Below, in pieces: positions 14,187-22,210 of a stretch of DNA of 45,051 bases. A program made the translations under genes and the position numbers. Position 1 is the stretch's first letter. Each line of letters begins with the position of its first letter. This stretch comes from Salpingoeca rosetta. Lineage: Eukaryota; Protista; Choanoflagellata. The DNA lies in NCBI GenBank assembly GCA_033442325.1, contig JAWQFM010000022.1, forward strand, positions 1,213,777 to 1,258,827, read 5' to 3'. The notes below the pieces were generated by a model. That model saw only the letters and a list, made by a program, of their open reading frames with translations, made no database searches and was not told the DNA's origin.

Positions 14187-17100
14187 ATGGGCAGAACCAT
14201 TCCCGACAGAGACACAAGCAGCGACAGCAGCGACAACGGCGACAACAGCGCGTATGCACAGTGGCTGGAGACGCTCACGCGGACAGTGCTTGACGGTGCA
14301 GAGTACGTGGTGACAGCAGCACAAGAGGATCCACGAGTGCTGGTGGCGACAGGCATCGCTGTTGCCATTGCTGTGGTCTTCTGGATCATGACTCACAAAC
14401 GTCGACACAGCCGCGAACCAGCACAGCCCACAAGCCGCGGTGAGCGCCAAAGGCATGTGTGTGTGTGTGTGTGTGTGTGTGTGTGTGTGCAAGTGTGTGT
14501 GTGTGTGTGTGCAAATGTGCGTGTGTGTGTGTGTTGGCGTGAGTGCAACCCTGTATGCATATCCGACATGGGTCACGCCGTGGGCTGCTCTGAGGAGCTT
14601 TGTTCGTGACTGCAAGCAAATGCGCATTGTTCATGGTCGCGTGAAACACTGGCTGTCGCTGCTTTGGGTCTTTGATATTTTGCTGCATTTTCCCCCAGAT
14701 ATACGGCAGCAGAGGCTGTCTGCACTTGGCGTTCCAGACGACAAAACAACCTCGACTCCGGCAATGCAAGGGTCACCCGTGCAGGAACAGCAGGGGCAGC
14801 CGTCCCGTCCAGTGAAAGATGACGCTGGCAGTAGCAGCGCACAGCAACCACGAGCTGTACCAGAGGCAAGCAGCCCACCGAGAAAGCGCCCATCTCCCGC
14901 CGAGCTTCGACGTAAGCACTTGGTGTGATGGGTGTGATGTGATGTATGTGTGTGTGTGTGTGTGTGTGCGCGCGCGCGCGACACTCCCGTTTGTACGTTG
15001 ACGCACGCATGTCATGTTTGTGCGTGTGTTTTGTGACATCAGGGCGGAAGTTTGCGGTGGCAGCCTCCCCAACGTCGGGAAGCATGCAGCAAGAGCCCCT
15101 GAAAACGACGACACCGACAGCACAACGTGCACGCCCAGCTGTCACGCCCGAGGCAGCCGCCAAGGCGCAGGCTGAGGTCAAGGCAGCCCTTGCAGGTGTG
15201 TCAGGGTGTATGACTGAGTGCAGCAACGTTGCGAGTGAGAAGGGAAGACTTTGAATCAACGCCAGCACTGCTGCGTCGAACTCGATACTCATTTCTTTCA
15301 TCAACCTTGTATCTGAATGTGTGGACCCCAGAAAAGAGACGCCTGCGATATCTGTCCACCATCGTCGGCGTTCCAATCGGTACCGCACTGATGTTTGTGA
15401 ATGCGTTTGTGAATGCGTTTGTGTGCGTGCGTGCGTGTGTGTGTGTGTGTGTGTGTGTGTGTGTGTGTGTGTGTGTGTGTGTGTGTGTGTGTGTGTGTGT
15501 GTGTGTGTGCGTATGTGTGTGTGTTGTGTGTGTGGCTCATCGTGTGGGACTCCATTGCCACTCATGTTCATCCCTTCTCCATCGCGCTTCCTCCACACCC
15601 ACACCACCTTCCATCTCCTCTCCTCCCATCCATCTCCTTCAACAACTAGAGTCGACCTCTGTGGACGTGGTGTCTGCGTACCGCCGCGCAGCAACAGACG
15701 CACGCCAGCCGCTCGCCTTTGCCCTTCGCGTGTGCAATCGCATCGCCCGCGAGCAGCGACCAGAGGACGTCGACAAAGACGCGATCACGCGCCTCAAGGT
15801 GGTCGCTGCATGCATCTTGGGTGGTGGATTGTGCGTGTTTGAATGTGGTGGCGGTGGGGTGGGGGACGTTGGTTCACTGAGCATCGTCAATACGACAGCA
15901 ACCGTGATGTGTCGCTGTCATGTCTCACCCTCACCGCCACTGCATCACTATCACCACCACCACGACCGCCATGATCACCACCACTGCGAGCAGGAGGCCG
16001 CTGGAGACGATGTGCGGCTGGAGCTGGTCCAGAGCACCGCTGTAGGTGCAGCAGACCTACCCGCCTGGGCAATGGGCGGTGGCGGCGGCAGCAACAGCGG
16101 CGGTGGCGGTGGGACTGTGTGGGATATTGTGCTGGATGTGTGCACGGGCCAGAATGGATCACCAGCCGTCGTCGCAGATCTCATTGCCCCGCTTGATGGT
16201 GCGGCGCTGTGCTGCGCTGTGTGTGTCTGTGTGTCTGTGTCTGTGTCTGTGTGTGTGTGTCTGTGTGTGTCTGTGTGTGTGTGTCTGTGTGTGTCTGTGT
16301 GTGTCTGTGTGCGTGTGATGACTCCTTCTCCTGCTGCAGTGAGTGCTGGTCACCGCCTTGTCCACCACTTTGTAACATCCCTGCCCTCACTCCCCCCTTC
16401 GTCATCTCCATCGCTATCCACGCAACCAGAGACGACACGGCAGGAGTGTGCAGTGTCGCTGCTCCGCACGGCCCTGCAGCCGCTGCGTGGCCTCAACACC
16501 GCCCGCACATGGGACGCCAACATGCTTGACCTCGCTCGCTTCTCCCTCGCCCGCATCTCCTCCGTCTTTGCCCACACCCTCCTCGCCGACCTCGCTGCTT
16601 GCCTCGCCCCGTCATCATCGTCGTCGTCGTCATCATCATCATCATCAGCAGGTGCATCTGAGGTGGTGCAGCTGCTGTGCTCGCCCCTGTTCGTGTCCCC
16701 GCTCCACGCTTCTGCAGAGAAGATGACGACAACGGCGGCGACGGCGGCGCTGGCGAAGGTGCGGCGCGGACCGCAGCCCGAGGAAGTGCTGCAGCCGCTG
16801 ATGGCACTGCAGGCTGCGGTGGTGAACTTCCTGCACACAACCGCTGCTGGGATGGCACGATGCAAGGGCGGCCAGACGCGTTTCCCGTACAGGGATGACG
16901 GTGGGTCATGCATTGATAGCGACGGCGCAATGACGGAATGATGGGATGGTGCACGTGTTGCCTTGTGTTGTGTTGTGTTGCCTTGTGTTGTGTTGTGTTG
17001 TGTTGTGTTGTGTCATGTTGTGTTGTGTCGTGTTGTGTTGTGTCATGTTGTGTTGTGTCGTGTTGTGTTGTGTTGTGTTGTGTTGTGTTGTGTTGTGTCG

Positions 17101-20100: not shown

Positions 20101-22210
20101 TCCTCGACCTCGTCCGCTCAAGGTGTTTGGTGGCGTGCGTGTGTATGTGTGTGTGCGTGTGCGTGTGTGCGTGTGCATGCGTGCGTGCGTGTGTGTGCGT
20201 GTCTGTGTGTGTGTGTGTGTGTGTGCGTGTGCGTGTGCGTGTGTGCCTGCGTGTTGGTGTCTGTGTGTCGATGAGTGCACATATGTGTGCATGTGTTCAT
20301 TTTCGGCCAATCAATGTGCTCATGTTTACCGTCAATTCATCCAATCTTGCAGGGAAACGCAGACAATTGACATGCCGGCGCTGGAGGCGTTTGCCCTCAA
20401 GATCAACGCAGCAGGCCAACAAGTGAGAGAGTGTGTGTCTGTCTGTCTTTGTGTGTGCGGTGCAACGATTGCACGTTGCAACGATTGTGTACGAGTGATT
20501 TTGTTGCTAAGTACCTCCTGCTGTTCACGCATCGTTATCGCAACCCGTTGCCCCCCCCCCACCCTCAAACACCCACTTATCAACACCGAAACCACCAACT
20601 CCACGGCCACGCCAGCCGCAGTCGTCAGACCCCACCGCCGCTGTTGTGTCCGCACCGCCGCCAACGGATGCGGAAGTGGCGGCCGAGGAGAGCGGCTACG
20701 AAGCCGCGCTCAAGCCACACGTGTTCGCCATGACCAACCTCGCTCTCGAGGTGCGTTGCCGCGCCCCGAATGCTGGGATGCGCTGTTGCCACCATCACCA
20801 CCATCCATGTCACATGAACCCGGACCACGTGCTTGTCCACCTCTTTCATACCATCTTCTCTGCCTTCTGGTGATCATGACCGTGTCCACCTGCCCTCGCC
20901 AACAGGACGGGTCGACGGAGCACGTGTTTGCGTCGCGCGTGTCCTCGTCGCCGTCGGAGAAGACGGCGCGCTCGCTCATGCGCGAACTCAAACATCTGAC
21001 GCGCAACATCCCCATCCACGTCGACTCGGCCATCTTCGCATGCGCCGTACGTGGTCGCACCAGTCACCTGGGGGCTGTTTTGCCCTTGTACTGTACCTGC
21101 GTCGTGCCGCGCTATGCTGCAAATTCCCTCACGGTATTTCCAACGACTTCACCGTTGCTACTGTCTTCCACCTGACTCACCCCTACCACGACCATCGTCT
21201 TCATCACATCATCACCATCGTCCAGGACGAGGCACGGCTGCCACTCGTGCGTGCGCTCATCAGCGGACCGCCCAACACCCCATATGCCTACGGCCTGTTC
21301 CTCTTTGACATTCTCATCCCGGAGCAGTACCCATCGCAGCCGCCGCAGGTGCGGTTTCTCACCAACGGCCGCGGTCGAATTCGCATGAATCCAAATCTGT
21401 ACAACAACGGCACCGTGTGCCTCAGCCTCCTCAACACCTGGCACGCTGCAGACACCCGCGAAAAGTGGTCCAAGTCTTCAAACCTCTACCAGGTGTGTGT
21501 GTGTGTGCGCGCGCGCGCGCGTGTGTGTGTGTGTGTGTGTGTGTGTGTGTGTGTGTGTGTGTGTGTGTGTGTGTGTGTGTGTGTGTGTGTGTGTGTGTGT
21601 GTGTGTGGGTATGCGTGCGTGTGTGTATGTGTGGGTATGCGTGCGTGTGTGTGTGCATGTGTGTGTGTGCGTGCATGTGTGTATGCGTGCACTTGTGTGT
21701 ATGCGTGCACTTGTGCGTGTATGTGCGTGTGTATGCAAAGGTACTCTGCGTCCGTACACATGCACGCACAATGCGTACTTGCGATGGTTCAATGTTGCCC
21801 CAGTTAACCTAGTCGCTTTCACCACCCCTGACGCCACTCCCTCATCCCCTCTTCCTTGATTTTTGCCACAGGTGCTGCTTGCGTTGCAGACGCACATGTT
21901 TGTGTCGAAGCAGATGTACAACGAGCCCGCAACGGTTTCGCAGAACACACGCGAGGATGAGGAGCGGGCGGAGCTGGACGACGATCGCGTGCTTGAGGGC
22001 ACCCTGCGCTACGGCATCCTGGACATGCTGCACCACCCGCCGCGCGGATTCGAGGAGGTGGTGGCGCTCCACTTCACCAACTGCCGGCACCACCTGCGGC
22101 GTCAGATCAGCGCGTGGCGGCGGCAGCGGCAGCGGCTGCACGTCATTCCACAGCTGCTGGACGAGGTGGAGGCGAAGCTGCTGGCACTCGGAGATGAGAA
22201 GCAGCCATAG
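14187..22210 (+). CDS. Predicted membrane-anchored Ufd2/UBE4-core-like protein fused to a BIRC6-type ubiquitin-conjugating (UBC) domain; multi-exon
   Basis: ATG 14187; TM VLVATGIAVAIAVVFWIMT followed by HKRRH; IRQQRLSAL. Ufd2-core-like LLPALMATFRGLDV..SFDKYAVKAKLVKLM..FSTSLLQSYLFALDSNITLL (18933-19398). UBC DEARLPLVRALISGPPNTPYAYGLFLFDILIPEQYP..NPNLYNNGTVCLSLLNTW..QVLLALQ..YNEP, catalytic Cys codon at 21418-21420; TAG 22208-22210. Exons from 18933 to the stop join in phase at GT-AG sites. The E2 call is strong; the Ufd2-core call is moderate. Confidence 0.75.
16960..17152. repeat. Intronic pentanucleotide repeat (TGTGT/TGTCG)n
   Basis: Directly visible. Confidence 0.9.
19478..19640. repeat. 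(CAA)n(CAT)n trinucleotide microsatellite in intron 19399-19685
   Basis: Directly visible; flanked by a GT donor at 19399 and an AG acceptor at 19684-19685. Confidence 0.9.

Follow-up and report, generated by a model that had tools for sequence, protein, structure and literature searches.

We analysed a 45,051-nucleotide stretch of DNA from the choanoflagellate Salpingoeca rosetta (contig JAWQFM010000022.1, positions 1,213,777 to 1,258,827 of the forward strand; hereafter the window) and found a single expressed gene on its plus strand, running from an ATG at 14187 to a TAG at 22208-22210, that encodes a protein of about 1,459 amino acids. In this protein a helical scaffold is followed by a ubiquitin-conjugating enzyme (E2) domain that, judged by sequence, is of the BIRC6 type and that occupies the position of the U-box in Ufd2/UBE4 enzymes. 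Structural modelling indicates that the C-terminal third of the scaffold has the fold of the Ufd2/UBE4 E4 core. The result is a real and new domain architecture made from known modules, for which a function can plausibly be proposed by analogy with characterised enzymes.

A single transcript joins the scaffold to the E2

We built the gene model by hand, chaining plus-strand open frames through GT..AG sites. The model has 16 exons, with GT..AG borders throughout and no internal stops (Table 1). The 3′ half of this structure and its expression were observed directly in RNA. In two stranded RNA sequencing (RNA-seq) runs, the six predicted 3′ exons had a depth of about 50-170 and most introns of about 0-5; the intron at 21047-21225 reached a depth of up to 26 in one run. 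Read joints supported the junctions 20750|20906 and 21046|21226, and loose read ends supported 19398|19686, 20122|20353 and 21492|21872. Two spliced RNA contigs from two other studies (2,925 and 1,097 nt) each contained all six 3′ exons in one molecule, in the blocks 19684-20120, 20351-20422, 20616-20748, 20904-21046, 21226-21487 and 21869-22214. These blocks span the Ufd2-like exon at 19686-20122, the last core helix, the linker and the E2, and end just beyond the stop. The contigs also showed that the acceptor in use is 20615, with exon 13 beginning at 20616, and that 20621 is not used; the linker therefore begins with PQSSDP and the frame is kept. The longer contig has an extra 1,496 nt toward the 5′ end, which would reach exon 5 if colinear. 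Further upstream, we chose the junction 18101|18423 over the alternative 18117|18376 because only the former is kept in a relative (contig L004). Exon 4 contains a possible additional intron at 15835-15993. An earlier first-pass annotation of the same letters had read the exons from 18933 to the stop as splicing in phase, and the read joints and both contigs bear this out over the 3′ exons.

Between the core and the E2 there is neither an ATG nor a stop. That two adjacent genes, or an assembly chimera, have been misread as one is therefore extremely improbable: independent spliced contigs cross the junction, the same order is repeated in three other organisms, and in one of these it lies within a single exon (L002). 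We found no point in favour of this explanation. The single transcript assumed in the first-pass annotation, as opposed to two separate ones, is what the RNA contigs show across the core–E2 junction, and L002 carries the corresponding segment (982-1230) as one uninterrupted open reading frame (ORF).

Two further observations concern the transcript. RNA depth ends at about 22221, some 11 nt past the stop codon, and the 2,925-nt contig has 34 further letters that do not match the window there; together these suggest either a very short, polyadenylated 3′ untranslated region (UTR) or a further 3′ UTR exon joined by splicing. A (CAA)n(CAT)n tract of about 140 nt (19504-19640), whose in-frame translation would be poly-His or poly-Ser, lies in the intron at 19399-19685 that separates the two Ufd2-like exons; in RNA it is spliced out.

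The C-terminal third of the scaffold has a Ufd2 core fold

Pfam searches over each exon and over longer contiguous orthologous ORFs returned Ufd2P_core (PF10408) only in two sub-threshold matches. The window exon starting SFDKY matched profile positions 401-471 of 628 (E 0.013, 14.4 bits) and the orthologous sequence in L004 matched positions 400-463 (E 0.024, 13.5 bits), so that the matches of two orthologues share the same profile positions, 400-471.

We then turned to structure. The orthologue of window exons 10 and 11 is a contiguous 209-residue segment in contig L001 (L001:1155-1781), which we modelled with AlphaFold (AF2) from a six-row alignment. The model had a predicted local distance difference test score (pLDDT) of 86.9 and a predicted template modelling score (pTM) of 0.84. 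Among 350,542 Protein Data Bank (PDB) chains searched with Foldseek, the six best matches were all yeast Ufd2, with template modelling (TM) scores by query of 0.53-0.75, whereas every other chain scored below 0.35. The best three Ufd2 chains had TM scores of 0.71-0.75 and root-mean-square deviations (rmsd) of 3.5-3.9; the Foldseek E-values for Ufd2 were marginal, at 0.02-0.16. VIA-align superimposed 194-202 of the 209 residues on Ufd2 chains with Z scores of 15.5-15.7 and rmsd of 3.0-3.3, covering Ufd2 residues 628/633-845. When VIA-align was run exhaustively against 48,161 representative chains, 2qiz_A was the sole top match (Z 15.6, rmsd 3.0, 196 of 209 residues, yeast Ufd2 633-845), and the next fold reached Z 10.6 with 147 residues aligned. 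Sequence identity between the model and Ufd2 was 12-14% in the structural alignments. Although the sequence evidence is thin, the structure is decisive for this part of the protein, and the model shows the C-terminal third of the scaffold to have the Ufd2/UBE4 E4-core fold. The matched Ufd2 range stops just short of the last core helices and the U-box, and exon 12 would sit where these last helices precede the U-box.

Upstream of the modelled segment, Ufd2 homology of the remaining 700 or so helical residues is something we infer. L004-L008 retain exons 6-9 in colinear order at 44-72% identity, as L001 does in part, and these exons presumably form the front and middle of the Ufd2-like core. 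Exons 4 and 5 may be the equivalent of the Ufd2 N-terminal region; exon 5 is kept in L004/L007 at 39% identity and has a weak match to ARM_ECM29_C (E 0.021). Going by the motifs of the Ufd2 family, the upstream exons may be colinear with the rest of Ufd2, and we treat this as a lead only.

Several observations weigh against a Ufd2-derived scaffold. Both Ufd2P_core matches fall below the cut-off of 20.4 bits. Searches of PDB sequences with phmmer and family profiles returned no Ufd2; an ESM-Atlas feature search gave mixed solenoid families with low recognition and no Ufd2, and an ESM-Atlas shape search gave no Ufd2 and nothing relevant. An AF2 model from a six-row alignment could lean on a memorised fold. 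The structural test covers about 210 of about 950 scaffold residues, and an AF2 model of the exon at 18425-18721 (three-row alignment) had a pLDDT of 55.6 and only generic helical matches.

These observations could also be explained if the scaffold were a generic ARM/HEAT solenoid without Ufd2 descent, in a large BIRC6/PHO2-like E2 with long N-terminal repeats; the failed Pfam cut-off, the assorted solenoid families and the ARM_ECM29_C match of exon 5 all fit this, and helical models often obtain Z scores of about 10-14 by chance. We consider it improbable all the same. Ufd2 stood 5 Z units above every other fold and covered 94% of the model, compared with about 70% for the next; all Ufd2 entries came first in two different aligners; and the profile match agrees with the structural match on the exon and on its place within the core. 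The ARM region of BIRC6 scored only Z 8.5 against the model in the exhaustive VIA-align search, and there were no UBE2O or PHO2-like chains among the matches. We therefore retain the Ufd2 assignment. The first-pass annotation had called the middle region Ufd2-core-like; the top structural matches, exclusively yeast Ufd2, uphold that call for the C-terminal third.

A BIRC6-type E2 occupies the position of the U-box

Exon 15 alone matched the Pfam family UQ_con (PF00179) with 69.9 bits against a cut-off of 27 (E 2.2e-19). Its best solved relatives were the UBC domains of BIRC6 (7.8e-27), UBE2O (8.7e-22) and UBE2Z (1.7e-19). In the BIRC6 construct 3CEG, exon 15 corresponds to residues 105-188, and exon 16 continues the alignment over residues 195-280 (E 0.0012). 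By these sequence comparisons the E2 is BIRC6-type, and with its NPN motif and catalytic Cys intact it is apparently competent. Both relatives whose sequence extends to the Cys, L001 and L004, keep it, and exon 15, the UBC core, is 82% identical in L004. We found no match to BIR, WD40 or any other BIRC6 accessory domain in any exon. A BIRC6 orthologue was ruled out by the missing BIR domain, the wrong size and a scaffold unlike that of BIRC6.

In Ufd2-type E4s the U-box has one known job, which is to recruit and activate a charged E2 beside the ubiquitin held by the core. No exon of the gene matched the Pfam U-box, exons 13 and 14 matched neither the U-box nor any other Pfam family, and RNA revealed no additional exon in the interval from the core to the E2. 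The two introns of this interval, of 193 and 155 nt, are too short to conceal a U-box, and the next downstream gene is on the opposite strand. Because the Ufd2-matched stretch is followed by one more helix, a linker of about 25 residues and then the E2 module, we conclude that the E2 occupies the position of the U-box. Within exons 13-14, a Y-x-x-x-L-x-x-x-x-F motif is kept in L001, L002 and L004. The first-pass annotation had named both a BIRC6-type E2 with an intact catalytic Cys and the absence of a U-box, and both agree with these results.

The architecture recurs in three other organisms

An exhaustive HMMER search of 1.84 billion representative proteins with the exon at 19686-20120 as query found three true relatives, at 59%, 56% and 33% identity. 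They were found as exon-sized ORF calls, and their contigs (L001; L002/L003; L004-L008) represent three other organisms. All three carry these parts in matching order on one strand, so that, by sequence, the architecture is present in four organisms including the source. In the numbering of our first, 1,478-residue model, L004 spans residues 434-1451, including the UBC domain, and L001 spans 837-1472. One uninterrupted L002 ORF takes in the last core helix, an acidic linker and the conserved start of the E2 module, which makes the fusion independent of any splice prediction. Exon 6 and the last exon, used as further queries, brought up only fragments of organisms already in the set, and a scan of JGI metagenomes with the exon-11 alignment returned no relatives.

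The core and E2 exons are under purifying selection, with nonsynonymous change (pN) of 0.14-0.37 and synonymous change (pS) of 0.50-0.75; synonymous sites are near saturation. A pseudogene was ruled out by expression, by the open frame and by pN being well below pS.

Intron positions differ among the relatives. In the AT-rich contig L001, window exons 10 and 11 are one exon and the intervening intron is absent, and in L002 the last core helix and the linker/E2 extension are not separated by an intron. These differences suggest recent intron gain or loss in the family.

The N-terminus probably carries a membrane anchor

Residues 51-69 are the only segment of the protein with a mean Kyte-Doolittle hydropathy above 2. 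The net charges flanking this helix are -3 on the N-terminal side and +4 on the C-terminal side, which, by the positive-inside rule, predicts a signal anchor with its N-terminus out and its C-terminus in, and with the tether, scaffold and E2 in the cytosol. With the reverse orientation, the E2 would lie where there is no E1 or ATP. Exons 2 and 3 had no Pfam match and, by composition, probably form a disordered tether of about 150 residues.

A rival to the anchor is that the protein may be soluble, exon 1 being a 5′ UTR exon or belonging to another transcript, translation starting at a downstream Met and the hydrophobic stretch never being made. Several points argue for this and against the anchor. 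Two out-of-frame ATGs (14066 and 14080) lie upstream of ATG 14187, and a soluble product could arise from Met codons that lie in frame within exons 2 and 3. No relative's N-terminus was recovered, a homologous-protein search with exon 4 having returned nothing. Read placement on the gene covered 19641-22300, with exons 1-10 outside that range, and no read was seen joining those exons.

On balance, however, we regard a soluble protein as unlikely. Exon 1 is fully contained in RNA-type runs. Of the 31-mers sampled from the gene, these runs contain 0.45-0.51, where 0.49 would be expected with all 16 exons and no introns and 0.35 without exons 1-4. ATG 14187 has the context ACAACATGG, with A at -3 and G at +4, and the donor and acceptor that join exon 1 to exon 2 are canonical and in phase. 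The two upstream ATGs may lie outside the transcript, because the start of a divergent neighbouring gene at 14049-14051 leaves only about 135 bp for promoter and 5′ UTR. One of them opens a 77-codon ORF, which is relevant only if the transcript starts upstream. Expression, phase and 31-mer share thus suggest that exon 1 is spliced to the rest of the gene, and the membrane anchor is probably real. The transmembrane helix followed by HKRRH, with a cytosolic catalytic side, had been proposed in the first-pass annotation; hydropathy and flanking charges support that part, and the splicing of exon 1 to the rest of the gene remains the indirect step.

Proposed mechanism

Taking these data together, the explanation that we find fairly probable for the gene as a whole is that it produces a membrane-anchored protein with a Ufd2 core and a BIRC6-type E2, which would act as an E3-independent E2/E4 hybrid at one membrane. 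The domain order would be a short acidic N-terminus, the signal-anchor helix (residues 51-69), the tether of about 150 residues, a helical region of about 950 residues, the linker of about 25 residues and the UBC domain, with everything C-terminal of the transmembrane helix in the cytosol. E1 would load ubiquitin onto Cys1323. The Ufd2-derived scaffold could grip ubiquitin, an already ubiquitylated client, or Cdc48 or a ubiquitin-like (UBL) adaptor, and the E2 in cis could then, like BIRC6 and UBE2O, hand over its ubiquitin with no need of a distinct E3. This would lengthen or branch the chains carried by clients at one membrane. Membrane anchoring and each of these enzymatic steps are predictions.

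We favour a hybrid enzyme because an E2 in cis and a Ufd2-core scaffold are combined here, and because of what is known of each. Ufd2 extends or branches chains on ubiquitylated clients and has Cdc48 and Rad23/Dsk2 as partners. BIRC6 and UBE2O need no separate E3 to transfer ubiquitin. According to its entry title, PDB 9KHT captures the Ufd2 core holding K29-linked ubiquitin beside U-box-bound Ubc4~Ub.

The main rival keeps the same architecture and holds that the scaffold only binds clients or partners as a platform, the protein being an ordinary E2/E3 hybrid that attaches a first ubiquitin or short chains without E4-type extension. The E2 is nearest to those of BIRC6 and UBE2O, which are established to modify substrates directly, and the likeness to Ufd2 is structural, at an identity so low that ubiquitin-binding surfaces need not persist. 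Set against this, the E2 stands exactly where Ufd2 positions its U-box-bound E2, a geometry that would suit transfer to a target held by the core. We therefore consider a simple platform rather unlikely, although it is the alternative that we take most seriously, and continue to prefer the E2/E4 hybrid.

A more specific version is tentative, and we hold it with less than even confidence. It describes a 'hard-wired E4', a Ufd2 paralogue that lost its U-box and gained a BIRC6-type E2 in cis and a membrane anchor. Such a single polypeptide might recognise ubiquitin that a membrane-proximal client already bears and extend or branch the chain independently of an E3, and could act with Cdc48 in extraction resembling endoplasmic-reticulum-associated degradation (ERAD).

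Novelty and implications

Full-text literature searches for a Ufd2 core together with UBC or UQ_con returned no such architecture, and we know of no Ufd2-core–E2 fusion in the family. As far as these literature searches reach, the layout is undescribed. The first-pass annotation had likewise not recognised it from characterised proteins, and that view stands within the scope covered here, namely four organisms among 1.8 billion representative proteins and no paper found. Of its whole reading, the fusion, the E2, the missing U-box and the Ufd2 fold of the C-terminal third are supported, whereas the rest of the core is putative, the link to the transmembrane exon is indirect, and its self-contained, chain-elongating E2/E4 enzyme is a functional prediction.

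If the proposal is true, a covalently attached E2 of the E3-independent type in place of a U-box would imply that scaffold and E2 geometry alone can suffice. The protein would offer a compact single-chain system for studying how an acceptor ubiquitin is positioned in chain extension or branching. It would also join BIRC6 and UBE2O as a third type of E2/E3(E4) hybrid and, should the anchor be real, would be the first that is tethered to a membrane. A eukaryote-wide survey of ubiquitin-system architectures described E2s as having exclusive accessory domains and little connection to other nodes (PMC4327156). The core of this protein goes unrecognised by Pfam, so surveys of that type would have missed the fusion and listed only a long E2. 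Further hidden fusions of this kind may exist.

Features of the gene and its surroundings

Table 1 Features of the gene at 14187-22210 (window coordinates; aa, amino acids of the model)
Feature	Position	Strand	Basis
Exon 1 (aa 1-84): start, acidic N-terminal 50 aa, transmembrane helix, HKRRH	14187..14439	+	GTGAGC donor, phase 1; RNA share 1.00
Predicted single transmembrane helix (aa 51-69)	14337..14393	+	Mean Kyte-Doolittle hydropathy 2.5 over 19 aa
HKRRH, directly after the transmembrane helix	14394-14408	+	Sequence
Exons 2 and 3 (aa 85-219), A/P/S/R/Q-rich	14699-14911, 15043-15234	+	In-phase GT..AG, composition
Exons 4 and 5 (aa 220-589), helical with G/H/S low-complexity inserts	15650-16198, 16340-16900	+	In-phase junctions
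Exons 6-9 (aa 590-937), helical with acidic insert	17245-17738, 17927-18101, 18423-18721, 18933-19007	+	Colinear in relatives
Exons 10 and 11 (aa 938-1142), Ufd2-core-like C-terminal third	19219-19398, 19686-20122	+	AF2 fold match, RNA-read junction
Exon 12 (aa 1143-1166), putative last core helix, ending ALEAFALKINAAGQQ	20353..20422	+	Present in spliced RNA contigs
Exons 13 and 14 (aa 1167-1258), acidic/Pro-rich linker, then E2 N-terminal extension and first helix	20616-20750, 20906-21046	+	RNA joints, contigs
Exon 15 (aa 1259-1347), UBC core	21226..21492	+	UQ_con 2.2e-19, 69.9 bits
NPN motif	21388-21396	+	Sequence
Catalytic Cys codon (aa 1323), in NGTVCLSLL	21418-21420	+	Sequence, aligned to the BIRC6 active-site stretch
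Exon 16 (aa 1348-1459 and TAG), UBC C-terminal half and BIRC6-like C-terminal extension	21872..22210	+	3CEG alignment

The window is intron-rich eukaryotic DNA with a GC content of about 0.57 and (GT)n tracts in most introns. Three runs of N (2246-2870, 35604-36435 and 37915-38014) account for the low-GC bins in its composition profile. The divergent neighbour, on the minus strand at 11942-14051, starts about 135 bp away from ATG 14187, and its first exon is rich in Gln. A FAM8A1/RDD reading of this neighbour was not confirmed: the piece with an RRxxAxxxD-type motif matched Pfam RDD only at E 0.16, and we draw no ERAD argument from it. On the other side, a convergent intronless ORF of 649 codons for a membrane protein ends at 22497. 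A partial eukaryotic small-subunit (SSU) rRNA lies at 37224-37881 (Rfam 547.6 bits, model positions 4-605) and is interrupted by an assembly gap.

Comparison with known systems

Ufd2, UBE4A and UBE4B (PDB 2QIZ, 3M63 and 9KHT) are the closest systems for the scaffold. The C-terminal third has the Ufd2 core fold in our model (Z 15.6, yeast residues 633-845), the helical region is of similar overall size, and in both cases a catalytic module comes straight after the last core helices. The window protein differs in having no U-box and an E2 fused in cis, whereas Ufd2 recruits its E2 in trans, and in its predicted N-terminal transmembrane helix and tether, whereas Ufd2 is soluble. The likeness is established for the C-terminal third of the scaffold, at 12-14% identity and with Ufd2P_core below its cut-off.

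For the E2, the closest solved UBC domain is that of BIRC6 (BRUCE/Apollon), which likewise has NPN in place of HPN and carries the C-terminal extension. Unlike BIRC6, the window protein has about 1,459 residues instead of about 4,860 and no BIR domain that we could find; the region before its UBC is Ufd2-like and not like the BIRC6 ARM region (Z 8.5), and it is probably membrane-anchored. UBE2O and UBE2Z belong to the same UBC subfamily (8.7e-22 and 1.7e-19). UBE2O in addition carries a substrate-binding region and an E2 in one chain, but its accessory region is unrelated, and no UBE2O chains appeared among the fold matches.

Ubc6, UBE2J1 and UBE2J2 hold an E2 active site at a membrane, facing the cytosol, as is predicted for the window protein. 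These are small tail-anchored E2s of another UBC subfamily and lack a scaffold, whereas in the window protein the predicted anchor is N-terminal and the E2 is C-terminal.

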